Assembly: GCA_002269645.1 (NCBI GenBank)
Contig: NIVC01000837.1
Coordinates: 62,001-126,000, forward strand
Length of the DNA stretch: 64,000 nt
Source: Macrostomum lignano
Taxonomy: Eukaryota
Direction: 5' to 3'
Each line of letters opens with the position of its first letter. The first letter of the stretch is position 1. Made by a program: the position numbers and the translations under genes. Shown here in pieces: positions 1-62,800 of this stretch. The notes under the pieces are model-generated. The model did no database searches. It saw only the letters and a program-made list of their open reading frames with translations, and was not told the origin of the DNA.

Positions 1-1695
1 TACTATTACATTATCATCACCACTCAATCCTTCCATTACCTATTTTTAAAGTCGTGAAAGAAAGACATTAACAGTACATTAAAACTTCTGACGACTGATT
101 AAGTATATAAATTAGCAGGTAATGACAACTACCGAGTTTTATAACGAAAAAGGAGAAAATCAATTCCGTATTGACTAATCTGAATTTTCTATAATTATAC
201 GATGCCTTGCCTCGCTTGCTTGCAGAACGCAGAAGTCAAGAATAAATAAACAGTCACAAAGTTTTTTCTGCAATGCTCAAAGCAAAACACTTTTTTTACC
301 AGTTAATAAACAAATTGCTACTTTGTTTTAAAAAACTAAAAAATTAAAAATTAACTAAATATAAATTTTACTTTTTTATTTCTTTGCTTAAAATTTGATT
401 CCTTTTGTTTTAACTATTATTTAAACCTATATTATACGGCTTTCCGGCTCGTGTCGAGTGTATCAACGAGCTGAGACATTCTAAATTGTTTTTGTACCTC
501 AAAACGAGACAGCCGCTTCTTTTGCACTACTGCTGCAGCCAAAGACCATACAATGTAAAGGCTGCACACATTATGAAAAAGAAGCCTACACTTAAAGTAT
601 CCAACATGAGGTCGAAGTGCGCGTGCTTTTATACAAAATTTTGGCCACGGACAAAACACGACACCGTGGGAGCTTGAAAATCGGCTTCAAGAGTTTGCAT
701 TTCCTTTATTGTCGTTAATAGCACTACACATGCAGATCTCGTTTCTCCTTGGTTTCAAGCAATCGCTTTAGCGTCTGAATAGTCTTATCGCAGATAAAAA
801 TTTTCTTTGAGTTGGAGTTGGAAATTGAAGTATCTGAGTTGAAAAGGCTGTGATAAAATCGTGGTAAAATTCTTGATCCGTGCTTGATTTTAAAAATACT
901 CGTAGCTTTTTAAGGTCTCTTTAGGTCATGAAACTCTGTGGTCCTATAGCTTTTAAAAGTTTTCATGTGAGATATTCCTTAAGAGTAGTCATTTGTATTT
1001 TAGGAATGTTTAGAAAGGCATTGCTTTTTATCATTCAAGGAATACAGTATATTACAAGAATAAGAATATATTTTTTTCTCATGAAAATTATCATTCATTA
1101 AAATATGATAAACCAACACTTTACGAGTATAAGTAGCTAGAATATTTTTCGCAATTTTACTAGAGTATTTAAAGACCCATATGAAGTAGAAGCGACAGTC
1201 GTGGACTACATTGGATGCAACAATACTTCAAGGAAAATATAGCTTTGGTGAGCAAATAGCAAAATTAAAGAAATCGTAATCGTGATCGTAATCGTAGCAA
1301 AATTAAAGAAAAACATTTTATAATATAAAACAAATTTCCCAGAGAAATAAAACTTGATTGAATGCGCGAATTCTGTGACTCACTGGAGTCACTGCAGGCA
1401 ATGCAAGTGGAAAATAGAATTCACGGATGTACATGCACGCTCATACAATTAAAAGCGATATTCATCGGCGGAATAAAAAGTTTTGAAAAATGGCAATTTC
1501 TATATAAATTTAGACTAAGCTAAAAATTATGCACACATTAAAACAAAGAAACTCAAAATTAACTATTATAAGGCTACAGTACGTAATGAGTACAAACCAG
1601 GCTGTTAAAAGCGCATTATCTTAACACGGATACTAATAAAGTGAAAATTCTGGCACATAATTTTTCTAAAAGTACATTGACCCAACCAGTACTTT

Positions 1696-4600
1696 TCAGT
1701 GACAGTTTTGGCACTCTGGATGGCACAGCCGTCCATTCAAGCGACACTTGCAGCCTCCGGAGGTGTCGCCTTTGCCGCCTGGGCCCCACCTGGGTCCCCG
1801 GGTAGCCCAGCAGATCTCGGTTTGGCACATCGAACAGGCCAGCCAGTCGCATCCCTCCTTCTTCTGCAGGAACACCTGGCAGTTCGGGCAGTTCATTGCC
1901 TCGCCGGATTTCACCATTTTCTGCGGTGAATAAAAGCAATTGTTTTGTGTTGCTTTCATTAGACGAGTCTGAGCCCCGCCATGCGGCACCCGCTGAGCCG
2001 ATCACTAATCTGCCTCATCTCATCTCACTAATCCTATCAGTTTTATCACACTAATCCGCCTCAGTCCCTCATCACTAATCCGCCTCAGTCCCCTATCACT
2101 AATCTGCCTCAGTCCCCTATCACTAATCCGCCTCAGTCCCCTATCACTAATCTGCCTCAGTCCCCTATCACTAATCCGCCTCAGTCCCCTATCACTAATC
2201 CGCCTCAGTCCCCTATCACTAATCTGTCTCAGTCCCCTATCACTAATCTGCCTCAGCCCCCTATCACTAATCTGCCTCAGTCCCCTATCACTAATCTGCC
2301 TCAGTCCCCTATCACTAATCTGCCTCAGTCCCCTATCACTAATCTGCTTCAGTCCCCTATCACTAATCCGCCTCAGTCCCTTATCACTAATCCGCCTCAG
2401 GCCCGTATCACTAATCCGCCTCAGTCCCCTATCACTAATCCGCCTCAGTCCCCTATCACTAATCCATTTCAGGCTTCTAGCTATTGCACTAATCCGTTTC
2501 AGGCTCCTATCACTAATCCGCCTCAGGCCCCTATCACTAATCCGCCTCAGGTCCCTATCACTAATCCGCCTCAGGCCCCTATCACTAATCCGCCTCAGGT
2601 CCCTATCACTAATCCGCCTCAGGCCCCTATCACTAATCCACCTCAGGCCCCTGTCCCAGCCGCAGCAGCGCTCACCTCCAGGTGCGTCAGATTGAGCTGG
2701 GCCTCCTTATTATTCTTAGCGTCAATCCTCAGCTGGTTCTGGTATCGCCGACAGCTGACGCCCGGATGCGAGGCCCGACACGTGACGCAGTTGTGCAGGC
2801 CGCACAGCATGCACTCGAAGCTGTTAACATCTTCGGCCAGCTCAACGAAGGCGTCGCAGTTAGGCGCCACGCAGTGGAACGTGTTGGGTATGACAGCTTC
2901 GGCTTGTCGAAGGCCCAACCGTTGCAACCGGTCGAATTCTTGACTGGTTAGCAACTGGTTGGCCTCCGAATCGGTCACCGTCTGCTGGCACTGATCGTGC
3001 GGACAGCGGACTGGCATGGAGTCGGCGTGGAGCAGGTGCTGGCGCAGGCACTCTCGGCACACCTCGTGGCCGCAGTCGCGCAATTGAATGCCGTCCGCAT
3101 CGCACTCTGCCGATACGTCCGTGATGCAGATCGGGCATTCGAAATCTTGCTTGGCCGGAATTAATGAACAGTTTGCCAAGGCCAGGTGCGCACTGAGATT
3201 GCGACTGCGCTGGCGCTCTTGCTGTGTTTGGTAATGCATGATGAGTGTTGGCATTGTTGTTGGCATTTGCTGTTTGACAGAGTGCAACGGTAATATAAAT
3301 CTTTATTACATGGCATTGTGTGATATAGCAAAGCCACATTGCTGGCTTTGAGTCAAGCGTGTTGAATTTGCCTAATTTTTTGCCTAATTTGCCACATTGT
3401 GTCACTGATGAAACTGAGCCTCAAATTGTGTCACTAATGAAAGTGAGCCTCAAAATGTGTCACTAATTCATTGTGCCTCAAATTGCGTCACTGATAAAAA
3501 CTGAGCCTCAAATTGTGTCACTGATGAAAGTGAGCCTCAAAATGTGTCACTAATTCATTGTGCCTCAAATTGCGTCACTGATAAAAACTGAGCCTCAAAT
3601 TGTGTCACTGATGAAAGTGAGCCTCAAAATGTGTCACTAATTCATTGTGCCTCAAATTGCGTCACTGATAAAAACTGAGCCTCAAAATGTGTCACTGATA
3701 AAACTGAGCCTCAAATTGTGTCACTAATGAAAGTGAGCCTCAAAATGTGTCACTAATTCATTGTGCCTCAAATTGCGTCACTGATAAAAACTGAGCCTCA
3801 AATTGTGTCACTGATGAAAGTGAGCCTCAAAATGTGTCACTAATTCATTGTGCCTCAAATTGCGTCACTGATAAAAACTGAGACTCAAATTGTGTCACTG
3901 GTGAACTGAGCTAATGAACTTACAAATGAACTAAACTCTTGATTTGTCATCGAGGGACTGACTGAGCTTCACTATCAGTGAACGGGTCGTTAAAGGACCT
4001 ACTTGAAAAGCAATTGTTTTCAACAGGACTTTGTCTTTATCATGACTTCTGCATCATGTGCTTCTGTAATCTATAGCCCTTTAAAACTGAAATAGCAAGC
4101 CCTCGCGAGAATCGTTTAGACTGAGTTAAACATGAGTTGCTCATTGCTCAGAATTCGAAAAAACGTGATTATTGGTTTATAATTCTTATAACAGTCGTTT
4201 GAATGTCGTGTATTCGCAGTTAGGGTTAAAGGTGTTGTTAAAGATTATAGCTGGTGAAAAAGCAATATTTGTTCCAAGGTCTTTCAGACCAAAAATGGCG
4301 CTTATAAATAAAATATATTTGTAAGCGAATTAATGCATACTGTATAAGCTGTCAAGTGTTGAACCGAAAACAAATAAATTAGAGCAACAGCAACAAAAAG
4401 AGAGTTTATGGTTGCTTAATGTCTACAAAGTTTAGAGACAAATGTCGGGGCGGGGCATATTTTCATGCAAAATGCAAAAACAATCAGCTTAAATCTAATT
4501 ATTTGCCAATATAGCTGTTTTATTACCAATTTAAGCCAACTCACTGGTCACAGCAGAGGGAATACATCAAAATTGATACATCAAAACAGAATAATTTCTG

Positions 4601-7600
4601 TACACGAGTAGTAGCTCGTATATTAACAAATGCGATGCTTGCTGTTCAAGGCTTCGCGAGGCGAATTTGCTCGACACGAGAGGAAAAATAGAGGGGGCTG
4701 GCACAATCAGCTGTGGGATAATCCGGTAAGAATATGCACACTGAAATATAATGACTATATTTGCAAAACAGGACTTTAATATATCTATTTTACATATCAA
4801 TATCTATGATGCGGGGCCCAGACATCTCACATCTATCTATGATGCTGGGGCCAGCCAGACATCTCACCCCTATCTATGATGCGGGGCCCAGACATCTCAC
4901 ATCTATCTATGATGCGGGGGCCAGACATCTCACCCCTATCTATGATGCAGGGGCCAGCCAGACATCTCACCCCAATTTATGATGCAGGGCCCAGACATCT
5001 CACCCCTATCTATGATGCAGGGCCCAGACATCTCACATCTATCTATGATGCAGGGGCCAGCCAGACATCTCAACCCTATTTATGATGCGGGGCCCAGACA
5101 TCTCAACCCTATCTATGATGCAGGGCCCAGACATCTCACTCCTATCTATGATGCGGGGTCCAGACATCTCAACCCTATCTATGATGCAGGGCCCAGACAT
5201 CTCACTCCTATCTATGATGCGGGGCCCAGACATCTCAACCCTATCTATGATGCAGGGCCCAGACATCTCACTCCTATCTATGATGCAGGGCCCAGACATC
5301 TAACCCCTATCTATGATGCAGGGCCCAGACATCTCACCCCTATGATGCAGGGCCCAGACATCTCACCCCTATCTATGATGCAGGGCCCAGACATCTAACC
5401 CCTATCTATGATGCAGGGCCCAGACATCTCACCCCTATCTATGATGCAGGGCCCAGACATCTCACCCCCATCTATGATGCAGGGCCCAGACATCTCACCC
5501 CTATCTATGATGCAGGGCCCAGACATCTCACCCCTATCTATGATGCAGGGCCCAGACATCTCACCCCTATCTATGATGCAGGGCCCAGACATCTCACCCC
5601 TATCTATGATGCAGGGCCCAGACATCTCACCCCTATCTATGATGCAGGGCCCAGACATCTCACCCCTATCTATGATGCAGGGCCCAGACATCTCACCCCT
5701 ATCTATGATGCAGGGCCCAGACATCTCACCCCTATCTATGATGCAGGGCCCAGACATCTCACCCCTATCTATGATGCAGGGCCCAGACATCTCACCCCTA
5801 TCTATGATGCAGGGCCCAGACATCTCACCCCTATCTATGATGCAGGGCCCAGACATCTCACCCCTATCTATGATGCAGGGCCCAGACATCTCACCCCTAT
5901 CTATGATGCAGGGCCCAGACATCTCACCCCTATCTATGATGCAGGGCATAGACATCTCACCCCTATCTATGATGCAGGGCATAGACATCTGACCCCAATA
6001 TCTATGATGCAGGGCATAGACATCTGACCCCAATATCTATGATGCAGGACATAGACATGTCACCTCAATATATGTAATGTAGGATTTATACACCTCACCC
6101 TGCCCTTCAAATTTACAAGCAACCAAGGAAACATATAGATGTAAAAAGACATATAGTCTGGGAAGCAAAACAGATAAGCATGATTAGCACAAAAGTTAAG
6201 GTCGATTTTTCTAACCGACAATAAAAACAATAAAGGCAGTAGTACTAATAGCATATTAGGATAAAAATTTACAACGAACCCAAAAGACTTTGGCGCCAAT
6301 ATATAATAACAAAATGAAAGTCTAGAAGAAATTAAAATGAAACACAAAAAACTAAAGTTAACCGTCACTGCCATGCCTCTTTATAAGATGTTGAAGCCGC
6401 TCTTGATCGGCTTTGTTTCGAATAGCCATAGATCTGGCGCGAAGAGCGTCCATTGCTCGGTCAAAAAATGCATCCTCATCGTCTTCTTTGTCTTCTTCTG
6501 CTAGTTGTGCTGCTTCTGCAGGACCGGAAGCAACGCTGGCATAGAGTTCACTCTCATCTTTGCTGCCCTGTTCATCCGTTTCCACAGGCGGGCTGGCCGT
6601 TTTGCCAGCTCCGAATTGAATGACCCGGCGCGGCTTGGGCTCGATTCGAATCGGCTTCCAGACTGGCGGCGGCGACGGCGAGTTCGAAGCCGGCCTAGCG
6701 CGTTCAATCGTTGGCTTGGGTGGCTTCGGCGGAGGCGGCGGCGGCGGCGGACGAGGCAGGCCGGCACCGCCGGTACTTGGCAACCGATTTATTGTTGGCG
6801 GAGGCGGCTGCGGCGGCGGCTTCGACGGCGGCAACGGTTTTTGGCGCAGATTCTGACGCAAGGATGCCAGAATGGAACTGGCAGATGGCAGATTCTGACG
6901 CTTTTTTGGCAGTTTCGAACTGGCAGACGACAGATTCTGACTCTGGGTTGGCAGATTCGAACTGGCAGACGGCAGATTCTGACGCTGGGTTGGCATATTC
7001 GAACTGGCAGACGGCAGATTCTGACTCTGGGTTGGCATATTCGAACTGGCAGACGGCAGATTCTGACGCTGGGTTGGCATATTCGAACTGGCAGACGGCA
7101 GATTCTGACTCTGGGTTGGCATATTCGAACTGGCAGACGGCAGATTCTGACTCTGGGTTGGCATATTCGAACTGGCAGACGGCAGATTCTGACGCTGGGT
7201 TGGCAGATTCAAACTGGCAGACGGCAGATTCTGACTCTGGGTTGGCAGATTCGAACTGGCAGACGGCAGATTCTGACTCTGGGTTGGCAGATTCGAACTG
7301 GCAGACGGCAGATTCTGACGCTGGGTTGGCATATTCGAACTTGCAGACGGCAGATTCTGACTCTGGGTTGGCAGATTCGAACTGGCAGACGGCAGATTCT
7401 GACTCTGGGTTGGCAGATTCGAACTGGCAGACGGCAGATTCTGACTCTGGGTTGGCAGATTCGAACTTGCAGACGGCAGATTCTGACTCTGGGTTGGCAG
7501 ATTCGACAAATTTTTACTGCAACGAGGCGGCAGTCGTGGAAGTGCAGTTTTCCCCGACGGCAACGAAGGCAGCGGCCTCATTGATCTGGCTCTGTCGCGG

Positions 7601-10600
7601 CTTTGTGCGTCTTTGCTCTGCTGCTGCTGCTGCTGCTAAAAGACAAAAAAAGAAATTAACAAGAAAATGTGTTTCGTTTCAGCAACAATAGCAAAGTTGC
7701 TGTCGGATTATATTGTTAAAAATTTAGATAGATAATTGAAATGGCCTATTGGAATCTGAGACTATTGCTGATAACTACTCATTAGCAGTAGTAGATTATT
7801 AATAGCAGTATTGCAAAAGCGGCCAATCAGGCAAAGGATATTGTTATAAAACTTGTGTAGAACAACACGCAAATTCATTAAACTTTTAGCAAACAGAAGA
7901 AGCTGCACTTTAACTTGCCAGCCAGCAACCTATGAAAAGATTGCAGTTATTAGAGCTGTTATTAATTTGTAGAAAAAACATAAACAATATTAGTATACTG
8001 TACTCAGAAGCTTATCTGATAGTTAAAATTCTGTTAGATTCTTAGAAAGCTCAAGTGAACTCTCCAGTGCACTTGTACAGTGAAACAATATTACTAATTT
8101 GTATGTAGATGTCAAAATATACCAATCAATGGACATTTGAATGTCTATGAAGTGTCTGTGTCCGTACCAATCACGTAAAAATCTGAATCTGAGCTTTTTA
8201 TGCAGCTGACATGAGTGGAAAATTTCAAAATTAAACATAATACATCAATACCTCTAATCTACCCTTTACCTTTTATTGATGCTTTAAATAAAATATGGAT
8301 TACAGAAACCATGGAGCCTAAAAAAATAACATTTAGTTTGAAAAAAACAGGGTACCAATTTGGCAATCGGGGTCCAAATTCAGAAGGCCAAAACTACGTG
8401 TCATGACGTACACTGCTAAAGAAACCTAGATCTGAACACAGTGTCTCATATCAGTGTGAATGTCTCATATCAGTGTGAATGTCTCATATCAGTGTGAATG
8501 TCTCATATCAGTGTGAATGTCTCATATCAGTGTGAATGTGTCTCATATCAGTGTGAATGTGTCTCATATCAGTGTGAATGTGTCTCATATCAGTGTGAAT
8601 GTGTCTCATATCAGTGTGAATGTGTCCCATATCGGTGTGAATGTGTCTCATATCAGTGTGAATGTGTCCCATATCAGTGTGAATGTGTCTCATATCAGTG
8701 TGAATGTGTCCCATATCAGTGTGAATGTGTCTCATATCAGTGAATGTGTCCCATATCAGTGTGAATGTCTCATATCAGTGTGAATGTCTCATATCAGTGT
8801 GAATGTGTCTCATATCAGTGTGAATGTCTCATATCAGTGTGAATGTCTCATAACAGTGTGAATGTCTCATATCAGTGTGAATGTCTCATATCAGTGTGAA
8901 TGTCTCATATCAGTGTGAATGTCTCATATCAGTGTGAATGTCCCATATCAGTGTGAATGTCTCATATCAGTGTGAATACGTCCTATATCAGTGTGAATGT
9001 GTCTCATATCAGTGTGAATGTCTCATATCAGTGTGAATGTGTCTCATATCAGTGTGAATGTCGCACATTAGTGTGAATGTCTCATATCAGTGTGAATGTC
9101 TCATATCAGTGTGAATGTCCCATATCAGTGTGAATGTCTCATATCAATGTGAATGTCCCATATCAGTGTGAATGTCTCATATCAGTGTGAATGTCTCATA
9201 TCAGTGTGAATGTCTCATATCAGTGTGAATGCGTCCCATATCAGTGTGAATGCGTCCCATATCAGTGTAAACCAGGTCAATAATGAGTGAAAACTGAAAA
9301 TCTTCACTCACCTGCTCCAGAAACTCCCGCTCCAGCTGCAGCCGCCGCGCTTCATCTTCGGCTTCAACAACCGGTTCGTAGCCGGGTGGCGGCTCTCCTG
9401 AGCAAATCTCGCAGCCCAGCCGACTCGGCTTGTTGCGAAAAGTGCAAGTCGGACAGTCCCAGCCTGGCGGCTGTGAATTCGTTCAGATATGACGCTTGAT
9501 TGCAGATTATCGATCGCTTTTATAAGTACATTTTACATAATGGCAAAAGAGAAATAGCAATAGAGAAATGACAACCGAATCCAGAGACATGGCAAATGGA
9601 TTCTCAGAGACATGGCAACTGGATTCACAGAGACATGGCAAATGGATTCTCAGAGACATGGCAACTGGATTCACAGAGACATGGCAAATGGATTCTCAGA
9701 GACATGACAAATGGATTCTCAGAGACATGGCAAATGGATTCTCAGAGACATGGCAACTGGATTCACAGAGACATGGCAAATGGATTCTCAGAGACATGGC
9801 AACTGGATTCACAGAGACATGGCAAATGGATTCTCAGAGACATGACAAATGGATTCTCAGAGACATGGCAAATGGATTCTCAGAGACATGGCAACTGGAT
9901 TCACAGAGACATGGCAAATGGATTCTCAGAGACATGGCAACTGGATTCACAGAGACATGGCAAATGGATTCTCAGAGACATGGCAACTGGATTCTCAGAG
10001 ACATGGCAACTGGATTCTCAGAGACATGGCAAATGGATTCTCAGAGACATGGCAACTGGATTCTCAGAGACATGGCAACTGGATTTTTAGAGGGTTAGGA
10101 TTCCCTACAAAGAAAAGGAGAGAACAGTTCCAGCCACAATAGCACTCTGCAGGTCACTTACACTACTATCAGAAGGAGGTGGCGGACAGGATTGCACAGG
10201 ATTAACCAGCTCAAATCTGTTGCAATTTCCCTTGGCGTCGCAGACAGCTTCTTTTAGGCTTCGCAGCTCGGCAGGCGGCGGTCGCCAGTCGCCAACAGCT
10301 CGCACGTAGACTCGAACCAGCAGCCGTGACGCCGGTAGCCTGCTAGTGCAGCCAGCCAAGGTTTCTGACTCGGCTGCCAGTCCATTCAGTGGCGCCTCGT
10401 CTGGCGGTATCTCTTGGCCAACTATGCAGGTTTGCAGGCGAGTCGGGATGTCGAATCTAAGCAGCAGTTCGCGCTTTAAATCGGCGATGGTGACGGGGAC
10501 AGAATCAACAACGGTCGGCATGGCCAGGTGAAGCGGCTGGCTGACGCGGGCGCATCTGGTCTGCAGTACTATGCTGACTAGTTGAACAGCTTCAATAGAC

Positions 10601-10767
10601 GATGCTAGCGAGCCATTGTCTGGATCGGGATACACTCGGACACCAGCGGCGGGTCCGGAGCAGAGCTGCTCAACTATTTGGCCAGCCTCAGCCTCATCAC
10701 CAGCCAGCACAGCCGACTGAAGGCGGCCGGCCAACTGCTGCTGACGGTGGCGCCAACTGTCCGACAT
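1696..10767 (-). CDS. RBCK1: HOIL-1L / RBCK1 RBR-type E3 ubiquitin ligase (LUBAC subunit); CDS complement(join(1696..1920,2676..3269,9312..9470,10162..10767)), about 527 aa
   Basis: Exon 10767-10162: LTM-like helix ([24 protein letters not shown]) and UBL ([27 protein letters not shown]). Exon 9470-9312: [24 protein letters not shown]. Exon 3269-2676: RING1 (CPIC...[10 protein letters not shown]...CPHDQC) and IBR (CVAPNC...[21 protein letters not shown]). Exon 1920-1696: RING2 [54 protein letters not shown]...CHPECQNCH*, nearly identical to the HOIL-1L C-terminus. All junctions are GT-AG and phase 0. An AG acceptor just upstream of the ATG implies a further 5' exon. Confidence 0.95.
2001..2652. 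repeat. 24-bp minisatellite (GCCTCAGTCCCCTATCACTAATCC)n filling the last RBCK1 intron
   Basis: Direct reading, about 27 copies. Confidence 0.95.
3405..3902. repeat. 28-30-bp minisatellite with an 87-bp three-monomer higher-order unit
   Basis: Monomers GTCACTGATAAAAACTGAGCCTCAAA / GTCACTGATGAAAGTGAGCCTCAAA / GTCACTAATTCATTGTGCCTCAAA recur in a largely fixed order. Confidence 0.9.
4802..6058. repeat. 33-bp minisatellite (TATCTATGATGCAGGGCCCAGACATCTCACCCC)n
   Basis: Direct reading; homogeneous core at 5400-5940. Confidence 0.97.
6358..7635 (-). CDS. Putative alternative terminal exon of RBCK1: poly-Q, 14-aa Ser/Thr/Pro repeat, polyproline and acidic/helical tail (425 aa)
   Basis: Acceptor ttttttgtctttTAG at 7636-7638 followed by (CAG)6, in phase 0 with the NZF exon donor. 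The frame is open for 1278 bp to TAA at 6358-6360. Unique GC-rich coding-like sequence lies on both sides of the internal repeat. No good phase-0 GT donor was found, so it is read as terminal. Confidence 0.65.
   Translation of the reverse strand, partial: QQQQQQSKDAQSRDRARSMRPLPSLPSGKTALPRLPPRCSKNLSNLPTQSQNLPSASSNLPTQSQNLPSASSNLPTQSQNLPSASSNLPTQSQNLPSASSNMPTQRQNLPSASSNLPTQSQNLPSASSNLPTQSQNLPSASLNLPTQRQNLPSASSNMPTQSQNLPSASSNMPTQSQNLPSASSNMPTQRQNLPSASSNMPTQSQNLPSASSNMPTQRQNLPSASSNLPTQSQNLSSASSKLPKKRQNLPSASSILASLRQNLRQKPLPPSKPPPQPPPPTINRLPSTGGAGLPRPPPPPPPPKPPKPTIERARPASNSPSPPPVWKPIRIEPKPRRVIQFGAGKTASPPVETDEQGSKDESELYASVASGPAEAAQLAEEDKEDDEDAFFDRAMDALRARSMAIRNKADQERLQHLIKRHGSDG
6848..7505 (-). repeat. 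42-bp coding tandem repeat ([14 protein letters not shown], about 15 copies) inside the putative alternative exon
   Basis: In-frame 42-bp period made of two related 21-bp halves. Confidence 0.9.
8440..9268. repeat. 19/21-bp minisatellite (TCTCATATCAGTGTGAATG[TG])n
   Basis: Direct reading. Confidence 0.95.
9582..10084. repeat. 23-bp minisatellite (CAGAGACATGGCAAATGGATTCT)n with a 138-bp higher-order period
   Basis: Variant order repeats every 6 monomers (46-aa period in the ORF track). Confidence 0.93.
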
Positions 10768-13123
10768 TGGGCCGGGCAGACAAACACTGCAGGGGGGGGG
10801 GGTGTCAAGCCAAACGGAGAAATTATACACAAATAGCCATTGGCTGAGGGCAGTATTGTCATAATGTGAAAGTCAGATGCATTTATTGCCAAACTGCTCC
10901 TATCCCCAATTAGTCATCTAATTAGGGTCTGACTCTAACCCCAAGGCATAGAGATTCCTATAATGGTTGTAGGACATTGTCACCAAAGGCAATGCACCAA
11001 GGTATTTTATTTTTATATTTATATTTATATCACTTATTGACTGATAACTAGCTGCAAATTGTGATTTATAATATGATAGCAGTATGGAATCAATATTACT
11101 TGTTTTAGTAAATTTAGTCAACAAAATGCAAGGTTAAATTAACTAAATATAAGAATGCTCTAAGTAGCCATTGCCAAAGTTTAATAATTGATTATAGAAT
11201 TTCAAACTAAATTATCATATTTTGGCCTTAGAATTTGATGGTTAATATTGAAATAACTTTTAATAGCCTGTCTTATAGAGTCATTCTATAATTTAACAAA
11301 ATAAATAGGGTAAATAAGAGGGAAAAAGAGGGAAAAAAGAAAAAAGGGCAATAGAAAAAGAAGACAAAAAAATTGCAACCAGACTATTAGAATGAAAACT
11401 AGATAGATACTGATAAACCATTTTTAATATATTGGTTTAGTAAAGGTAAAAGTTACAATTGAAGCTAAGTTTCTTTTTGTTAAAATCAGATATAAATTAG
11501 GCACCAAAGAAGTATAATTTATATTTTTATAAAATTGATCATATACCTATATAGATAAATATGAGCTAGATAGAGACAAAAATTTTAATATAGTTTATAT
11601 TTTAAAGTATAAAGTATAAATTATAAAGTATATATAATAACTATATATTTTAAGCAATTAAGAGTAATAAGACTATATATTTTCACCAATAGCCAATACA
11701 AATCATAATTCTCATTTATTTAATTGTTTTAAACATTTTAGATAAAGTATGATAGGGGCCTAGTCTTTTTTCAACTTAACTTGAAATTTTCCCTTTCAGT
11801 CTAAACTTTATTGATTAGGCCTAATAAAAATACTAAAACTAAATCTTATTGGATATTAGATATTATTTAAGATACTAGATATTAGATTTAGTATACTAGT
11901 AGGCCCCTAATCTAAAAAAATTTCCCTGCCTTAATGGCCTAATCTAGTTTTAGATAGATTAGCAAACTTTAGACTTAGGTCTAGGACTAGATATTGTAGA
12001 TAAAACCCAAAAATCTTATTGTAAGCAACTGGTGCAATTTCAGTTTAGGGGAATTCATCAAAAAAACTAAATTTGATAGATAGGCCTATTCTAAGAAAAA
12101 AGAGAGAGCGCATCTAGTAAAAAAATATATAAAACTCTGCAACTGCAAAGTGATATATAACAGCAATGTCAATGAACCAAAAGTCATAGACAACTGACAA
12201 CAACACTAACAGGCTCTAGAGTCTTATATAGGTTCATTGAAGTTAGAAGAAGAAGTTATATAGGTAGGTTTATCTAGCAATGCGAATTGCAGCAAGTTTA
12301 CTGAATCTGGCAACTAGTACTGAATAAGAGTGAACTTAGGTCGTTTTAGGATGTACATGTATGTATTTCATCCTGACCTGCCTAAATGTACAGGTCAGTA
12401 ATGCCGATAACAATATACAATACCGTGTAGATAGCAGACTTAGAGTTGACAAGGTCCAAGGCCACTTTAATTATGTCTAGAAGCATATTCACCACACAGT
12501 CCACTACCCACGTGACCTATAAACTAAGTTGTTAATTGTTTCATGGATATAGCTAATAGAAATTAGGCCTAAGCAGAGTTTTCTAGTCGTCACAGGGCGG
12601 CAGTATTTAGGGAAAAAATCAAAGTGTGCCCAATCTTGGTTCAATAAAAGCTGTGATTTCTATAGCTCTGTCTTTTGTTTTATTGGTATATGGAAGCCCC
12701 AGCTTAAATTCTGATCTTTTCAATCACTGAAATCAGTAGTAGATCACTGCATAATCATCTATCAGCCTGATAAATAAAATTTTCTTGGAAATATACATTT
12801 TTACGGTCGGTCTCGGGTTCAGCCGTCTAATCAGTTGCTCCCTGTAACGGTTACTGCAATAAAAGCATGCACAAGCAAAGATGCGATAACTGAGCAACAT
12901 CTCTACCAGCTTGCCGACACTATTAAAGCTGCAGTATCTCTAGAAAAGGCCGACCTCATGATGATCCTGGTTCCCAGTGACGGCGTCCCGCAATCTCTTG
13001 GTGCTCCCCCAGACGGTCTTCTGGTGGAGCATGTGCAGGATGACCGCACCCAGTGGCACCTTGCATTCAGCAGACCATTTAGGGCCGCTTATAATGACCG
13101 TTACGTCGCAAATGACGCCACTG

Positions 13124-13458: not shown

Positions 13459-14323
13459 CTCTACAGTGACAATGACGCTGAAGCGCTTTAAGACTCAAGA
13501 ACGCCGGTAAAACGTATTGTAAACGCTACTTTTATTCCTAGAGCCTCTTAAGACTAATATTAGTAGCTCCAAATTCTCAAATACGAGTCATTCTAAAAGC
13601 ATCCTGGATTCCTGTAGATGCTTCAGAGTCCCAGACAGTAAAACTCTTCAGAACGTCTCCTAGGCAATGCACTTTTTAGCGCATTGCACTTTGTTGGCTA
13701 ACAACACACTTTTATATTTAATTTTTCTGTACGAATTCACTCACAATTTTGTCGGGATCTCACTAGAGAGCTCTTGGGCGGGACTACACTGTCTGCCTGG
13801 AAAGAAACAAAACATCAAAAAAGAGTCCATTAGTTTTCTTGTCCAAATATCAGTGCCAATGGTCAGCTAAAGTCTTGAGACCCGAGTTCCTTTCTGAGAC
13901 TTGTGCGCTACTGCTGTTTTTCTCTCGCCGCGTTCTCAGCTGAGCTATACTGGGTCATGCATTCATCGTCCTTAGTTCTCGTCCCCAAAGCGCTCCATCT
14001 CTCGTCCTCTTCCCATTTCTACCCTGCTCAGCTTACAATTAATCCATATGTGTAGCTACATACAGCCTTTATTCTCTTCCCCACATATGCGCGGTATAAG
14101 GGCGACAGATGTACACTGTACATGTACACAGGCACCTGAGCTAATCGACAGGCAGCCTTTCTCATCTGTTTGCCGACTCCTCTCCCCTGCCCTCTCCAGC
14201 ACAGAGTAGGCTTGCTAAAAGCAGGGAAAATTTAAGAAAGCCACCAGAACAGTTGGGCGAGGAAGACCAGAGCAATCTAGTTGGACCTCCGACGGCAGAG
14301 CTCAGTTGGTCAGTCGCTCAATT

Positions 14324-17300
14324 ATGATGTCATCATCGCCAATACACCTGGACTACGAGGAGATTCTGGAGCACATTGGCAGCCTGGGCAGATATCAGCT
14401 GATGCTATTTAATCTGGTAGCCATATTCATCTGGAAATTTGCCGCCAACATGGTCCTAATCGAATTTCAAATTATTCAGCCACAATTTACCTGTCGCTCG
14501 TCGGTGCACCTGAATAGCGACGAAGATTATGTTAATGAAACAGTTCCAACTTCCATTGTAGAAGTTTTTAATCACTCAAAATTTCTCGACAGATCCAATA
14601 CTGAGCAGTGCTGGCAAAATGATGGAAATTCTACAGCAGACAAGGTGGCTTGTTCGCTCTTTGTGTACGACACCAGCGAATGGCTGCTAACCATTTCTAG
14701 CGAGGTAAAGCCCTATGCTGCACATTATCGTAACTACAATTATAACTAATAAAATACGTAAGTAATTTTTTTCCCTGACCCAACCTTCTTGACTGAAATC
14801 ATCCAGTGACCCTCCTGTGATTGAGACCTATCCTCCACTGACTGGGGATACTCACCCTCCACTGACTGGGGATACTCACCCTCCACTGACTGGGGATACC
14901 CACCCTCCACTGACTGGGGATACTCACTCTCCACTGACTGGGGATACCCACCCTCCACTGACTGGGGATACCCACCCTCCACTGACTGGGGATACTCACC
15001 CTCCACTGACTGGGGATACCCACCCTCCACTGACTGGGGATACTCACCCTCCACTGACTGGGGATACTCACCCTTACCCTCCACTGACTGGGGATACCCA
15101 CCCTCCACTGACTGGGGATACCCACCCTCCACTGACTGGGGATACCCACCCTCCACTGACTGGGGATACCCACCCTCCACTGACTGGGGATACTCACCCT
15201 CCACTGACTGGGGATACCCACCCTCCACTGACTGGGGATACTCAACCTCTATCGACTTGAATTTCACTAACAATACGCTCGTACAAGCTCACAAGAACAC
15301 GCAACATAAATTCTAAAGTAAACTCCCACACCTTGATGCTCCCTTCCCCCTGCATTCAGTGGAATCTGGTGTGCGGCCGAAGCGGCCTGCAGCCATTGGT
15401 ATTTGCCACTTACGCTCTGGGCTTTGGATTTGGTCTTGTCCTCGGCTTAATGGCCGACAAGTAAGTGGTCGCTTTTTTTAATGCTATTTTCTGCTTTTAC
15501 ACCAGACGCCAGAGAATATCGAGCGCTATTGATATTGCTATAGATTGACAACTCTCTTTGTGACTATACTCTAGTATAAACCATGGATACTAACTACTCG
15601 TAGATGTGCCACACCCCAGAATATACGCTCATTCACTCTTCTTTCAGTAGCAAAATGTTCGTTTTTTTCCTTTATATAAAAGTAATGTTTACAAAATGCT
15701 TGAAGCTTTTAAAGCTGCAACAATCACCGCCTGCTTTCTATACAAGAGGACCCATTAAATTAGCATGAAGCTGCACCCAAATCCAGTGCGAGTGCATAGC
15801 GAGCTTGAGAAGGGGTAGTGCTCCAGTCCCAGCTAGACCGATAAACCGTTTCGCTACCTCTTGCCCGCTTGTGTTTGACTTTGACCTCTCTCCTTTCTGC
15901 TCTCTGATTGGCTGAGCTAGATTGGGCCTGTCCCCTAGGCTGAGTTTCGTCCATCTTTGTGCGTTCGCTTGTGTACATCGAGTTAAATGCTATCGACTTT
16001 CCTTTCTTGAGAAAGGAAAAGAAACTTTAGCTGCCATATAAAATTTTAAGAGACACTGCGCAGACAAACTACTGAAAAAGAGTAGATGCTGGAGTTTTTT
16101 CCCACAACTTTTAGTACGAGTTGCATAACTAGTATAGTTATTCTAGTATTTGCTGTATAGGCTTAGACTAGCTACTAACAGTAGGCGACAATGTACATCT
16201 ATTAAACAAATTTCACATCAAAATGCATCTCTCAGATTCGGCCGTCGACCAGTCGTGCTGATCAGCTGCGCTGCCGAGCTGTCGCTCAGCTTAGCCGAAT
16301 GTCTCGCCCCGAATCTGCCCGTCTATCTGACGCTGCACTTCTGCCGCGGCATATTCGCCACCGTCGGCCTGTTGGCCGCCGTCTGCGTCGCCGAATTCGT
16401 CGCCTGCCGGCATCGAGCTGCCGTGGCAAACCTGCTGTGGCTGTACTGGTGCTTCGGCTACGTGTCTGTGGCTGGCTTGGCCTACTTTGTGCGGCACTGG
16501 CGCTGGCTGCAGGTGTGCGCCTGCCTGACCTGCGTCTGCTACGTGGCCAGCTACTTGTAAGCTTGGGGAGAGTGAGGCTCGCTTTGCTAACTAGAGGCTT
16601 CACAAGCTAGGGACTTCACAGAGATATCACAAGCTGGAGATTCCACAAAAGCTTTCAAACAAATTTTCCAGTCTGCTGGAGGAGTCGCCGCGCTGGCTGA
16701 TGGCCAACGGGCGCAACTCGGAGGCTCTGCGGGTTTGCCAGCGAATTGCCAAGATCAACCAGAGAAGCATTCCGACTGCTACTGTTGAGCTGATGGTGAG
16801 ATTTCAGTGGAGGATTTTCCATAGAGAAGAGGGGTTTCATGGTTTTAGGATTCCCTTTGGAAAGGTTTTAGGATTCCCCGTTGCAGTGATTTAGGATTCC
16901 TTGTGGAGCGGTTTTGGGATTTCCCGTGAGAGTGTTTCTGGGATTCCCCGTAGGAGTGTTTCTGAGATTCCCCGTAAGAGTGTTTCCGGGATTCCCCTTA
17001 GGAGTGTTACTGGGATTTCCCGTAAGAGTGTTTCCGGGATTCCCCGTTGCAGTGATTTAGGATTCCTCGTGGAGCGGTTTTGGGATTTCCCGTGAGAGTG
17101 TTTCTGGGATTCCCCGTAGGAGTGTTTCTGGGATTTCCCGTAAGAGTGTTTCCAGGATTCCCCTTAGGAGTGTTACTGGGATTTCCCTTAAGAGTGTTTC
17201 CGGGATTCCCCGTAGGAATGTTTCTGGGATACCCCGGGAGAGTGTTTCCGGGATTCCCCTTAGGAATGTTTCTGGGATTCCCCGGGAGAGTGTTTCCGGG

Positions 17301-20281
17301 ATTCAACGTAGGAGTGTTTCTGGGATTCCCCGTAGGAGTGTTTCCGGAATTCCCCGTAGGAATGTTTCTGGGATTTCCCGTAAGAGTGTTTCCGGGATTC
17401 CCCTTAGGAGTGTTACTGGGATTTCCCGTAAGAGTGTTTCCGGGATTCCCCGTAGGAATGTTTCTGGGATTCCCCGTAGGAGTGTTTCCGGAATTCCCCG
17501 TAGGAATGTTTCTGGGATTCCCCGAGAGAGTGTTTCCGAGATTCCTCTTAGGAGTGTTACTGGGATTTCCCGTAAGAGTGTTTCCGGGATTCCCCGTAGG
17601 AATGTTTCTGGGATTCCCCGGGAGAGTGTTTCCGGGATTCCCCTTAGGAATGTTTCTGGGATTTCCCGTAAGAGTGTTTCCGGGATTCCCCGTAGGAATG
17701 TTTCTGGGATTCCCCGGGAGAGTGTTTCCGGGATTCCCCTTAGGAATGTTACTGGGATTTCCCGTAAGAGTGTTTCCGGGATTTCAGTAGAAGTTCTAAG
17801 ATTCTCCACAGTGAGCTCTGGGTTCCCTCAATTAGAAGGTGCATAGTAGGATAGTAGGATTAAGTATATTAAAATGGCAACTAATGGAGCTGGAGAGTTT
17901 TCTAGATGAAAGAGAAAATTTAATGGGCAAAATATGTCGCTTCTACAGACAGCTCAGCGACCGGTGTTCCAGTCTGAGAGCCACATCAAGGAGCTTTTTA
18001 ATACGCCCGTGATGCTGCGAAAGACCCTCGTGCTGTTTCTGGCTTGGTGAGCAGGTTTAGTTGTGTCAGAATATCTAGTGTTAAGTTAAATGTAATAAGA
18101 TATAATTAAACGATAAAGATGATTAATCAACTCAATAAACGCACAGGTTCGCCATCAGCCTCACTTACTACGGCGTCTCGCTTGACTCCGGCTTTGTTGT
18201 CGCTAGCAACGCTTTTGTCAGCACAGCGCTGTCAGGCCTCATCGAGGCACCGGCCTACGTGGCTGCCTGGCTGCTGGCCGACCGGCTGGGCCGACGGGTG
18301 CCCTCAATGGCGATGTACATCGGCCTGGGCGCCTGCCTGGCATTGCTCAACCTGCCTGACCGCGGTAAGGGTTGCTATGGGGGGAGAGGGTTGCTAAAGG
18401 AAAAAAACGGTTGCTATGAAGGCGGTGGAGGGTTGCTATAGGAGGGAAGCGAGTTGCTTTGGGGAGGGGATACGGTTGCCACGAGAGGGAACAGGTTGCT
18501 ATGAAAAGGGAAAGGGTTGCTATGAGAGCGAAGAGGGTTGCTATGGTAGGGAAAGGGTTGCTATGGGAGCGAAGAGGGTTGCTATGGTAGGGAAAAGGGT
18601 TGCTATGGGAGCGGAGAGGGTTGCTATGGTAGGGAAAAGGGTTGCTATGGGAGCGGAGAGGGTTGCTATGGTAGGGAAAAGGGTTGCTATGGGAGCGGAG
18701 AGGGTTGCTATGGTAGGGAAAAGGGTTTCTATGGGAGCAGGTGTGAATCAAAATTAGAGTTGCATCAGTAGAAATTTACTCGTATGAAACATATTATATG
18801 ACTATGACGAATCCGTGCACGAAGCCTAGTTAGTATTCAATTTCTAAGAATCAGCAAACGACCCCCATTTGCAGACTCGGTAATTTACACGCTAATTGCC
18901 CTGACCGCCAAGCTGCTGGTCACCAGCGCATTCTCGGTGCTGATTCACTATACAGCGGAAATCTGCCCGACCTCTGTGCGCAACGCCGGCCTGTTCGCTT
19001 GCAGCGCCGTCGGCCGGGCCGCCTCGGTTGCCGCACCGTTCGTCGTGATGAACGGCGGCGCCGGCGTCTCCAGGCTGGCCGCCAGCGTCGGTTTCGCCTG
19101 CCTGAGCGTCGCCGCCGGCCTTGCGATCGGCGTCGGACTGCCGGAGACCCGCGGCCTGCCGCTGATGCAGAGCGTGCAGGAGGCCAACCTGGTCACGCCG
19201 TGAGGAGCTGGGGGGTCATTGCCCTCCCCTCCGTGTCTTGTGGATAGTTGGTCATTGCCCTCCCTTTCATGTCTTGTGGATAGTTGGTCATTGCCCTCCC
19301 ATGTCTTGTGGATAGTTGGTCATTGCCCTCCCCTCCGTGTCTTGTGGATAGTTGGTCATTGCCCTCCCTTCCATGGCTTGTGGATAGTTGGTCATTGCCC
19401 TCCCCTCCGTGTCTTGTGGATAGTTGGTCATTGCCCTCCCCTCCGTGTCTTGTGGATAGTTGGTCATTGCCCTCCCTTCCATGTCTTGTGGATAATTGGT
19501 CATTGCCCTCCCTTTCATGTCTTGTGGATAGTTGGTCATTGCCCTCCCTTCCATGTCTTGTGGATAGTTGGTCATTGCCCTCCCTTTCATGTCTTGTGGA
19601 TAGTTGGTAATTGTTTCCCCTTTGTGTCTTGTGGGTTTGTTTACCTAGATTTGTCATTACCCACTGTCTCCACTGGTCATTACCCACTGTCTCACATTGG
19701 TCATTACCCACTGTCTCACATTGGTCATTACCCCTCTCTCACACTAGTCATTACCCACTGTCTACACTGGTCATTACCCACTGTCTCACATTGGTCATTA
19801 CCCACTGTCTCACACTGGTCATTACCCACTGTCTCACACTGGTCATTACCCACTGTCTCACACTGGTCATTACCCACTGTCTCACACTGGTCATTACCCA
19901 CTGTCTCACACTGGTCATTACCCACTGTCTCACACTGGTCATTACCCACTATCTCACATTCCAAGATTCGAACCCATCTGCCCCAATTTCAGCGGCAGGG
20001 AGTCGCAATTTTTGGATCTGCTCAAAAAGCGTCGCGACGACATTGCCGTGTACTTTGTCGGTCAAGGCGGCTCGGCTGTTGCCATTGAAACGGCCAACGC
20101 TTCCTCATTCGGTTCCTCTCGCCCAGCCGAGTGGAGCCAGTGGAGCCAGCCGGAGCTCGAACCCGAGGAAGCGGTGAATTCGCCAGCGCCAGCCGCCGCA
20201 GCTGCCTCCGAGCCCGGCTATGATGACGACCCCGCCGTATTCTTCTCGTCGTCCAAGTATCTGATCAATCCGTTCGCGTGA
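14324..20281 (+). CDS. SLC22-family organic cation/anion transporter (MFS); join(14324..14704,15360..15460,16236..16556,16672..16795,17949..18046,18147..18364,18875..19199,19993..20281), 618 aa
   Basis: Family motifs fall in order across GT-AG junctions: DYEEILEHIGSLGRYQ, large Cys-containing loop, SEWNLVC, LMADKFGRRPV, EESPRWL, WFAISLTYYG, ADRLGRR, YTAEICPTSVRN, LPETRG. Total 1857 nt in one frame. Confidence 0.93.
14828..15246. repeat. 24-bp minisatellite (CCCTCCACTGACTGGGGATACYCA)n, SLC22 intron 1
   Basis: Direct reading. Confidence 0.95.
16866..17783. repeat. 24-bp minisatellite (TTTCTGGGATTCCCCGTAGGAGTG)n, SLC22 intron 4
   Basis: Direct reading; 8-aa period in the ORF track. Confidence 0.93.
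18368..18737. repeat. 21-bp minisatellite (core GGGTTGCTATG) with a 42-bp dimer, SLC22 intron 6
   Basis: Direct reading; begins inside the GTAAGG donor. Confidence 0.9.
19213..19607. repeat. 36-bp minisatellite (GGTCATTGCCCTCCCTTCCATGTCTTGTGGATAGTT)n, SLC22 intron 7
   Basis: Direct reading. Confidence 0.95.
19652..19960. repeat. 24-bp minisatellite (GGTCATTACCCACTGTCTCACACT)n, SLC22 intron 7
   Basis: Direct reading; shares GGTCATT(A/G)CCC with the neighbouring 36-mer. Confidence 0.95.
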
Positions 20282-61686: not shown

Positions 61687-62800
61687 TCAGTCCTTGTAGC
61701 AAACAGGCTGCCGAGGGCGAAACTCGTACGGCTCCCGGTGGCAAATGTTTCCGGGCTCCTGACGCTCCAGGTCGAGCCGCGGGTCGTCTTCCACGGCAAC
61801 CACCGGGTCAGTCAGCGCACCATCGGGTTCAGGTGTCTCAAGCCGCTTAGGAGAGTCCGGCCGGCCGGTCCACTGATTTGAGTGCGCCAGCCGCAGGCCA
61901 CCGCCAGGCTGATTGGCCGGAGTGACCAGCGCCGTGTTCAGGCCGTGCTGCACCACGAACTTGGCTGGCACCGGAGGAGTTCCAGGTCGCATCCTCAGCC
62001 AGATTGGATCGCCAGCTTGCTCCGTCATTGTCAGCGGGTGTCGAAGCCGACGGCCCCACATGAGGATGTCTGGAGAGGCTGCGCGATTGCCGCTTGGCCG
62101 GCTGGTCCTTATCGTCAGCAACAGCTTTTGCAGAAAATGGTCGAACGGCACCACCTTAGTCCACGCTCTGAGACCATCCTTAATGATTCGCACCAGTCTC
62201 TCAGCTTGACCATTCGAGGCGGGATGATACGGCGGGGTGTGCAGTTCACGACAACCAATGCTGCGCAGCCACTGCGAGACCTTCTCCGACTTGAACTCCG
62301 GCGCATTGTCCGACACCAGCGTCTGAGGCACTCCATTCCTCGCAAAAACCGCTCTTAGAACACGCAGTACACTTTCTGCAGATCGATCAGGCACCTGAAT
62401 CGCCTCAGGCCACCCTGAATAGGAGTCGGACAACAGCAGGAGCAGCCCAATACCAGAGATCTCACAGTGGTCCATGTGAACTCGCGCCCAAGGCTCACTC
62501 TCGGCTGGCCAGATGTCGATTTTCCGCTGAAGCACCGGTCGAGTTTCTGAGCACTGCGGACAGCGCTCCACAAAAGTCCGCACCTCGCGATCCAGGCCAG
62601 GCCACCAGAATTCCTTGGAGATGTGCGCCTTGGTGTTGTCAGCACTCGGGTGTACTTCGTCATGGGCCGCCTCCAGGATGCGCCTGCGGAGAATGGGTGG
62701 CGGCACAATTCTGGTTCCATGGATCACCAGGCCATCTTCGACTGACAGAGCCTCACGACGCGCCTTGTACGGTCTCTCCACCTGCGACACCTGGCCCACC
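61687..62800 (-). CDS. Gypsy pol: integrase (frameshifted by 1 nt relative to RT-RH near 62790)
   Basis: Zn finger H-x4-H...CPQC; catalytic RVHMD, LVSDNAPEF, SNGQAERLV. The natural reading TGRWARC/SQVERPYKARREALSVEDG needs one frame change. Confidence 0.92.

Follow-up and report, generated by a model that had tools for sequence, protein, structure and literature searches.

A long intronic reading frame in phase with the NZF exon of a Macrostomum lignano HOIL-1 homologue, and the possibility of an RBR-less isoform

The RBCK1/HOIL-1 locus and its canonical exons

The window analysed here, a stretch of 64,000 nucleotides from Macrostomum lignano contig NIVC01000837.1, hosts BOX15_Mlig021711g1, a minus-strand homologue of RBCK1/HOIL-1 whose protein gives full-length matches to RBCK1 of many animals (E ~1e-73 to 1e-89). 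The RBR module (RING1-IBR-RING2) is present (Pfam IBR E=4.8e-9, zf-C3HC4 E=4e-4, IBR_1 E=8e-3), as is an NZF with a C-terminal helical extension (Pfam Zn_ribbon_RanBP E=4.5e-7), and the HOIL-1L NZF (PDB 3b08_B) matches host residues 202-253 of 255 (E=1.7e-8). The LTM is weak and below the Pfam cut-off (E=0.3) and a ubiquitin-family Pfam match is absent; the N-terminal LTM/UBL region is collinear with full-length RBCK1 homologues carrying PF25393/PF00240. The PH domain PF16764, which many vertebrate matches carry, was absent from the host protein in the Pfam search.

Exon 1 covers the putative LTM-UBL region (CDS 10162-10767, minus strand). In the annotation a 5'-partial CDS opens at 10782, directly after ccccctgcag, at what is probably a spliced-leader (SL) trans-splice acceptor. 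The NZF exon (9312-9470, minus strand, in phase 0 at both ends, with the donor CAG|GTGAGT) holds, as the 3b08_B match indicates, the whole NZF plus its helical tail, and the minus-strand RING1-IBR exon (2676-3221 as annotated, acceptor 3221) and last coding exon (RING2, 1696-1920) complete the gene. The original prediction had placed the acceptor of the RING1 exon at 3269. The junction reads EFLEQ|QERQRS, however, in P0001, a transcript-based GenBank protein, and in P0121 and P0122, which two other copies of the locus encode; the actual acceptor is thus 3221, 48 nt downstream, and 3222-3269 is a 48-nt upstream extension of the exon in that earlier model.

Anatomy and composition of the intronic reading frame

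The 6.1-kb intron downstream of the NZF exon contains, on the minus strand, a candidate 3' splice site at 7636-7659, consisting of a polypyrimidine tract and AG (ttctttttttgtcttttag|CAG, with the AG at 7637-7636), after which 425 sense codons run to a TAA at 6360-6358. The predicted elements are all there: the 7635 acceptor, phase 0, the 425 codons and the TAA at 6358. The NZF exon closes in phase 0 on a good donor and the open reading frame (ORF) opens in phase 0, so that the anatomy which a junction between the two would need is real. The tract is the strongest among the 400 AG sites of the intron, with 16 pyrimidines out of 19 compared with 10-13 at the gene's cis acceptors and 15 where exon 1 presumably accepts the SL; the site itself ends in TAG, not in the commoner CAG of the YTNCAG consensus (taken from PMC8629364). 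No donor of the form GT[AG]AG or AG|GT was found in a scan of the ORF, which could therefore only be a terminal exon. AATAAA and ATTAAA are missing within 900 nt downstream of the TAA, and the canonical stop likewise lacks either signal.

Read along the minus strand, the ORF begins with a (CAG)6 run that supplies its first 6 codons as polyQ (7618-7635), followed by a unique 5' part (7507-7617) with the first ATG at 7581-7579, a 42-bp minisatellite (6846-7506; TRF: 15.7 copies, 94% matches, score 1133) and a proline-rich segment that is mostly (CCG)n-encoded (6712-6845; TRF: (CGG)8 at 6727-6750 and (GGC)12 at 6797-6832). The unique C-terminal 117 codons (TIERARP...KRHGSDG, 6361-6711) form a GC-rich island, and the TAA (6358-6360) stands at a sharp GC-to-AT transition. 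A sharp GC island has the acceptor and the stop as its bounds. Tandem DNA makes up ~739 of the 1278 nt (58%). The tail had been described as a low-complexity one with polyproline runs; repetitive and polyproline-bearing it is, but it translates mostly tandem DNA, namely the (CAG)6 run, the minisatellite and (CCG)n. A reading of its proline runs as SH3/EVH1/profilin-type ligands is unsupported, as these runs are (CCG)n microsatellites, and that of ELYASV as a tyrosine motif is unsupported as well.

Tandem arrays account for 39% of the window, and minisatellites occur in all three introns of the host gene, with periods of 24, 87, 33, 42, 19 and 23 bp. Stop-to-stop ORFs of at least 250 codons number 29 in the window, nearly all of them on arrays and the longest reaching 489 codons; the length of the present ORF is thus not in itself evidence. 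In fact, the 42-bp array is open in three more long ORFs, two on the plus strand (359 and 330 codons) and one on the minus strand (269 codons). Variants among 40 units of the array split 5:11 in frame and 4:12 and 2:14 out of frame, with no codon-position or synonymous bias, and under the codon model the minisatellite core scores worst of the three frames in the frame of the ORF.

The unique tail, on the other hand, carries a codon-like signal. Three-base periodicity over the last 117 codons (chi2 24.2 against an open-conditioned null of 6.1 +/- 3.6, P<0.003) persists when acidic and SP runs are removed (chi2 18.1, P=0.01), is comparable to that of canonical exon chunks and is accompanied by a base use of 41% G and 9% T at first codon positions. 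Composition gives P ~0.005-0.02 for the 162 codons of non-repeat tail to be open, and 341 of the 488 tail nt are free of stops in an antisense frame as well. GC3 lies at 0.48-0.52 in the ORF (0.48 in the C-terminal 117 codons) compared with 0.67-0.85 in known exons, and the margin of the codon model is small. Every other unique GC-rich island in the host gene is a known exon. The non-repeat tail is somewhat more than chance would produce; the repeat core is not.

Homeologous copies, the paralogue and protein collections

Two further homeologous copies of the locus, L002 and L003, allow the ORF to be compared with its window version. Minisatellite copy number varies across the window, L002 and L003 (~15.7, 16.7 and 9.7, respectively), the (CAG) run has 6 units in the window and 7 in L002, and L003 has a 354-nt insert between the CAG run and a second CAA/CAG run, which is open only in the frame of the ORF (~0.12 x 1/3 by chance). 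The acceptor motif tgtcttttag|CAGCAG is common to all three copies, and the 129 non-repeat nt at 7507-7635, counted with (CAG)6, differ from the other two copies at 0 and 1 positions. The proline-rich segment has a 6-nt in-frame deletion in both other copies, and the C-terminal 117 codons differ by 5 substitutions and a 3-nt insertion from L002 and by 1 substitution from L003. None of the indels between the copies (6-nt, 3-nt, 354-nt and repeat number) breaks the frame, which stays open in each of the three; only 3% of point changes in the ORF would create a stop, however, so that at such divergence an open frame needs no selection.

The non-repeat parts of the ORF diverge by 1.30% and 0.81% between copies, much as the deep intron does (1.31% and 1.01%; P=1 and 0.8), whereas the canonical CDS diverges by 0.065% (P=3e-4 and 9e-3), a comparison of low power that counts 8 and 4 substitutions. 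Substitutions in the tail are 5 nonsynonymous to 3 synonymous, and the dN/dS of 0.55 is not different from 1 (P=0.42). Intron sequence adjoining the canonical exons likewise shows no difference from copy to copy, and divergence rates may thus vary regionally. A paralogue with 43% identity has no counterpart of the ORF in the same intron.

Searches with the tail returned 0 matches among 5.8 billion proteins, 0 among 1.84 billion representatives (full phmmer) and nothing in Pfam, and the 407-aa ORF is not on record in protein collections. None of the gene models at the three homeologous copies, nor the older UniProt models, contains an exon at 6358-7635; GenBank appears to list just a single protein for each gene here, so that a minor isoform may go unrecorded. 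The host locus also contains an SLC22-like gene that lacks annotation.

The M. lignano genome also contains a separate RBR-less LTM-UBL-NZF gene, BOX15_Mlig004010g1 (P0127), with an LTM at E=3.4e-6 and an LTM-UBL region closest to the SHARPIN chain 5y3t_C. SHARPIN, the third LUBAC subunit, has the architecture PH-LTM-UBL-NZF, and the hypothetical isoform would resemble it in having LTM-UBL-NZF without an RBR. The host protein, however, has no PH domain and only a weak LTM, and P0127 fits SHARPIN better. The proposal that one locus supplies both an enzymatic and a scaffolding subunit is weakened by this separate gene.

Interpretation of the reading frame and its likeness to known systems

We lean towards the view that the ORF at 6358-7635 is intronic sequence not under selection, and that it is never spliced in, or no more than as noise. 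An intronic 42-bp minisatellite, its period a multiple of three, would be open by construction, and with (CAG)n, (CCG)n and a short GC-rich unique segment on its flanks it may by chance have yielded a frame without stops, opening at a strong pyrimidine-AG site and matching the NZF exon in phase. In the normal mRNA 9312 is joined to 3221 and this sequence is skipped, and the ORF would presumably lack expression or function; the site, if ever used, would give a minor, lineage-specific and unconstrained alternative last exon (a 'proto-exon') rather than a conserved LUBAC scaffold. We favour this explanation because more than half of the frame is tandem DNA and array-driven ORFs of 250-489 codons are usual in the window, because the 42-mer has several open frames, on either strand, and no coding signature, because homologue, gene model and paralogue counterpart are all wanting while divergence is intron-like and GC3 low, and because a SHARPIN-like gene already exists separately. 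What it accommodates less easily is that the best of 400 acceptors sits exactly at the start of the ORF, that the tail is periodic in a gene whose other unique GC-rich islands are known exons, and that indels keep the frame in three copies. Moreover, a cis donor followed by a strong acceptor would normally be spliced to it, the copy comparison has low power, and the missing gene model is matched by the unannotated SLC22-like gene and by the practice of one GenBank protein per gene. The original prediction is thus borne out in part: the reading frame is real, while the SHARPIN-like isoform is a possibility and not a discovery.

That isoform would require a genuine alternative last exon, in which the donor at 9312 is spliced to 7635 and polyadenylation past 6358 yields an RBR-less LTM-UBL-NZF protein of 680 aa whose tail would be repetitive, proline-rich and acidic; we regard this as doubtful, though it is the foremost of the rival readings. 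The phase-0/phase-0 fit, the good donor and the strongest acceptor of the intron all argue for it, as do the missing internal donor, which makes the exon necessarily terminal, the codon-like periodicity of the tail, the sharp GC island from acceptor to stop, the frame kept in three copies despite indels and the whole NZF with its helical tail inside the preceding exon. According to a rule cited in PMC8629364, an acceptor with an upstream cis donor is expected to be cis-spliced, and the mammalian RBCK2 cited in PMC11014604 offers a precedent. The transcript-based models of all three copies, on the other hand, are without the exon, there is no homologue and no counterpart in the paralogue, divergence is intron-like with dN/dS not below 1 and GC3 low, and the minisatellite core has no coding signature. 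A canonical poly(A) signal is absent, as it is from the canonical 3' end, and a separate SHARPIN-like gene exists; in addition, an acceptor so strong and so early would cut short the majority of transcripts, and the CDS of the gene is extremely constrained. Were the product made, it could, with the same doubtful standing, compete with full-length HOIL-1 for HOIP or SHARPIN and for M1-linked chains, as a dominant-negative form or as a scaffold. Rather unlikely in our estimate is a young Macrostomum-specific last exon, born from minisatellite and trinucleotide repeats, that makes an RBR-less LUBAC-like regulator and stays open in three copies.

An independent nested gene is improbable, and a relic of coding sequence is slightly more so. 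The nested gene would be an intron-internal transcript, SL trans-spliced at 7635 or translated from the ATG at 7581, and its product an equally improbable orphan, a protein of 407-426 aa that is repetitive, rich in proline and without relation to LUBAC. The M. lignano spliced leader is 35 nt long and ends in ATG, and ~30% of M. lignano genes undergo SL trans-splicing (both as given in PMC8629364); an SL-derived ATG would be in frame with an ORF whose phase-0 start lies right at the acceptor, and the pyrimidine tract of 16/19 is nearer to that of the presumed exon 1 SL acceptor (15/19) than to those of the cis acceptors (10-13/19). Yet the annotation used SL reads and labels additional genes of one transcriptional unit g2, g3 and onwards, with no g2 at any of the three copies, the acceptor reads TTTTAG and not YTNCAG, the cis donor at 9312 upstream favours cis-splicing under the rule quoted above, and no homologue was found. 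A relic would be a decayed retroposed or transposed fragment, or a dead nested gene, the A-rich plus-strand end of which now mimics a minus-strand polypyrimidine tract as antisense Alu elements do. Codon periodicity alongside neutral-like divergence and flat GC3 would fit such a history, A-rich plus-strand sequence does adjoin the island and its flanks share a 17-nt similarity; this similarity is not significant in shuffles that preserve the A-rich composition (P=0.09), however, protein searches gave neither a parent gene nor a related protein, a second copy is missing from ~150 kb of related loci, and an empty site is absent from all three copies.

The unselected intronic ORF that we favour resembles intronic minisatellites (VNTRs) with periods that are multiples of three, in its 42-bp units of 94% identity and varying copy number, its several open frames on both strands and its array-filled neighbouring introns. 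It departs from the ordinary intronic arrays of the window in being joined to a 162-codon, GC-rich, periodic tail and to an unusually strong acceptor. In the exonisation of antisense Alu elements and in intronic-polyadenylation isoforms, a pyrimidine-rich tract beside repeat-derived sequence provides an intronic 3' splice site; here, too, such a tract adjoins repeat sequence, and the protein made would be cut short and end in a novel C-terminus, although no transposable-element origin is demonstrable and no poly(A) signal was found.

The closest parallel to the proposed product is RBCK2, a splice variant of mammalian RBCK1 (Tatematsu et al. 2008, J Biol Chem 283:11575, as cited in PMC11014604). 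RBCK2 is the N-terminal half of RBCK1 without RING-IBR-RING, comes from the same locus and can inhibit the full-length ligase, so that a dominant-negative HOIL-1 variant would not be new as a concept. RBCK2 is experimentally documented, whereas the candidate isoform is a prediction from sequence and its tail is the translation of a lineage-specific minisatellite without homologue; any likeness would thus be convergent and not conserved.

If the isoform were true, RBR-less and potentially dominant-negative HOIL-1 variants would arise repeatedly in animals, and the locus would be a clean case of an intronic minisatellite recruited as coding sequence, a convergent counterpart of RBCK2 in which the birth of coding sequence is caught in the act. 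The array and ORF content of the window, on the other hand, counsels caution, as in a genome so laden with repeats a good acceptor with a long ORF in phase after it does not count as evidence for an exon. A SHARPIN-like subunit is in any case already encoded elsewhere in this flatworm.

The host gene and the anatomy of the candidate exon

BOX15_Mlig021711g1 (10782-1696, minus strand; adding 62000 to a window position gives that on contig NIVC01000837.1) encodes the 516-residue protein P0001 and is, judged by its sequence, clearly a RBCK1/HOIL-1 homologue. P0001 contains the Pfam domains IBR, RanBP2-type NZF and RING and matches RBCK1 of many animals over its full length (E about 1e-73 to 1e-89), and the match of its NZF exon to the solved structure of the HOIL-1L NZF takes in the helical tail. 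The window matches the contig in GCA_002269645.1 at 100% identity over positions 1-20782; no paper on the locus tag Mlig021711 turned up in a literature search. The exon model has exons at 10767-10162, 9470-9312 (NZF), 3221-2676 and 1920-1696 on the minus strand, with all boundaries in phase 0. The original prediction had placed the RING1-exon acceptor at 3269; the protein models of all three gene copies join LEQ directly to QERQRS, and the acceptor in use is thus 3221. The AG at 3269, used by no model, is a second in-frame AG 48 nt upstream (3222-3269, minus strand), whose use would add 16 residues.

The observation of a candidate exon in the intron between NZF and RING1 is partly confirmed. 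As predicted, 7635 comes right after a pyrimidine tract and AG and opens a run of 425 codons in phase 0, closed by TAA at 6358 (minus strand). Reading it as a cassette exon with onward splicing was rejected, as neither a GT[AG]AG nor an AG/GT donor occurs inside 6358-7635; it could therefore only be a terminal exon. No AATAAA or ATTAAA was found after it, a test that is uninformative because the canonical 3' end is likewise without either signal. The low-complexity tail with polyproline runs that had been described does hold such runs, but it is mostly tandem DNA, the polyproline being encoded by (CCG)n microsatellites. Together with these, a 42-bp minisatellite (6846-7506, minus strand; 15.7 copies, 94% matches) and a (CAG)6 run make up about 58% of the candidate exon.

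Such repeats are the rule here: minisatellites fill all three introns of the gene, and tandem arrays (more than 30 minisatellites, period 4-203 bp) occupy 39% of the 64-kb window, where they give rise, on either strand, to dozens of spurious ORFs 130-489 codons long. Of the 29 stop-to-stop ORFs in the window that reach 250 codons or more, nearly all lie on arrays, and the longest has 489 codons; the 42-mer array itself has several open frames, with both strands represented. ORF length is thus worthless as evidence where array-driven long ORFs are so common, and what remains to be explained is the 162-codon non-repeat tail, which would be open by composition with P about 0.005-0.02. Protein look-up of the 407-aa contiguous ORF returned no record, the plus-strand ORFs opposite the candidate exon (359 and 326 aa) hold no Pfam family, and no Rfam family was found within window 1-11500.

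Coding-like signals and divergence among the locus copies

Several features are exon-like. The acceptor at 7635 has the strongest pyrimidine tract among the 400 AG sites of the intron (16/19, versus 10-13 at the real cis acceptors of the gene), and all other unique GC-rich islands within the HOIL-1 gene are exons. The last 117 codons of the tail (6361-6711) show codon-type periodicity, first positions being rich in G and poor in T (chi2 24 versus 6 +/- 3.6 for an open-conditioned null), which remains significant when the acidic and SP runs are removed. Hidden polyploidy is described for M. lignano (PMC10468722); two further copies of the locus, L002 and L003 (contigs NIVC01000835.1 and NIVC01003003.1), are present in the assembly. 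The ORF shares its acceptor and its stop across the three copies (425, 439 and 457 codons), and none of the indels disrupts the frame; they comprise 6 nt, 3 nt, a single CAG unit, changes in repeat number and, in L003, a 354-nt insert. This insert (L003 13283-13636, 65% GC), present in one copy of the three, sits between two CAG/CAA runs at the ORF start and is open in the ORF frame only; it shows no codon periodicity and no Pfam family. Frame preservation is nevertheless weaker than it appears, because most indels sit in trinucleotide or 42-bp repeats and because the insert lacks periodicity and would be open with P about 0.12. Furthermore, an intact frame is expected anyway at about 1% divergence, since stops arise from only 3% of point changes.

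Other comparisons argue against a selected exon. Between copies, the non-repeat parts of the candidate exon differ by 1.30% and 0.81% and the deep intron by 1.31% and 1.01%, with one substitution in 1536 nt of canonical CDS. Tail substitutions number 5 nonsynonymous versus 3 synonymous, a dN/dS of 0.55 that is not significant; GC3 lies near 0.5 versus 0.67-0.85 in known exons, and the 42-bp repeat core scores worst in the proposed frame, with 40 units showing no bias towards synonymous variation. None of the gene models at the three copies uses the candidate exon or represents a nested gene, and tblastn for a counterpart in the same intron of the 43%-identical paralogue (L004) gave low-complexity matches only. 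The tail has no Pfam family and no relatives among 5.8 billion proteins in a word-indexed search, and its last 117 residues have none among 1.84 billion cluster representatives by exhaustive phmmer. Its absence from the protein collection says little about expression, as the Logan transcript proteins of M. lignano are seemingly not included and the canonical HOIL-1 of the species comes only from NCBI/UniRef.

A separate SHARPIN-like gene and the weighing of readings

The proposal that one locus supplies both an enzymatic and a scaffolding LUBAC subunit is not needed, since a separate SHARPIN, by architecture, exists in the species. P0127 (BOX15_Mlig004010g1, 393 aa; L005 3490-7273, plus strand, contig NIVC01003120.1) lacks an RBR but has an LTM (E=3.4e-6), a UBL and an NZF (E=1e-5). 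It runs collinear, at 28% identity, with the N-terminal half of HOIL-1, and the SHARPIN chain in PDB 5y3t is the closest match to its LTM-UBL. Its gene shares a strand with the HOIL-1 paralogue and is the next one upstream, 2.7 kb away. The paralogue is named 'g2' in other copies, and the locus tags suggest that the two may share one transcriptional unit. In P0127 the NZF exon extends into RRICYSRDFLLSLQNCP, which resembles the eIF4E-binding motif of 4E-BP (Pfam eIF_4EBP E=1.7e-4, below cut-off; PDB 4E-BP1 E=0.014); no homologue was found outside M. lignano. The RBR-less HOIL-1 isoform would itself be at best a variation on a known theme, as mammalian RBCK2, described as an RBR-less inhibitory isoform of RBCK1 in the account that PMC11014604 gives of Tatematsu 2008, embodies the same concept. 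The reading of the candidate exon as such an isoform currently has no positive support.

A rough likelihood tally is near even on whether the 7635 site is spliced at some level; for a conserved, selected protein module it is clearly unfavourable. We therefore prefer to regard the candidate exon as a by-product, either unused or a noise-level proto-exon, and consider this somewhat better than an even bet. A genuine, functional alternative last exon of the HOIL-1 gene comes second and is doubtful: the acceptor and the periodicity speak for it, the divergence and codon usage against. An acceptor downstream of a cis donor is expected to be cis-spliced, by a rule as cited in PMC8629364, and the 9312>7635 junction would thus be the expected outcome if the acceptor were active. 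That 7635 instead starts an SL trans-spliced nested gene is improbable; the spliced leader ends in ATG, which would be in frame with the ORF, but the annotation contains no second gene, and the motif at the acceptor does not match. A relic reading, in which coding sequence was inserted here or once existed here, is slightly less probable still, and its target-site-duplication test was not significant; a retroposon origin with such a duplication was dropped (best flank alignment 15/17, shuffle P=0.09).

Other features of the window and related loci

The single substitution in the canonical HOIL-1 CDS of the three copies (window 1696-10767, minus strand, versus L002 and L003) is R>Q, with none synonymous, and the intron adjoining the exons is also identical, while the deep intron differs by 1.0-1.3%. 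On sequence grounds, this near-invariance suggests either gene conversion or a constraint of unusual strength.

The paralogue carries, in its NZF-RING1 intron, a small GC-rich island (L004 9887-10009, plus strand) that follows a CAG acceptor in phase 0 and reads RATLRRRALRNP...DSDDEENKADEPREAADP, then TAG. It is a predicted exon in two UniProt models (P0009 and P0129), is absent from transcript-based models and has no similarity to the window tail.

SLC22 (OCT/OAT/URAT)-like exons at about 14219-18438 (plus strand), possibly extending over 12.8-20.3 kb, match PDB OCT2 (E=6.9e-18) and are not among the called genes of contig NIVC01000837.1. As a yardstick for exon divergence they were of no help and were dropped, since their own evolution between copies is relaxed (synonymous:nonsynonymous 8:12 and 6:9); the L002 copy has one in-frame stop. 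The locus would be an unannotated gene or else a duplicate in decay. Finally, 61687-63959 (minus strand) holds an LTR-retrotransposon pol with RT, RNase H, integrase zinc-binding and integrase core domains (Pfam E 1e-13 to 1e-31).
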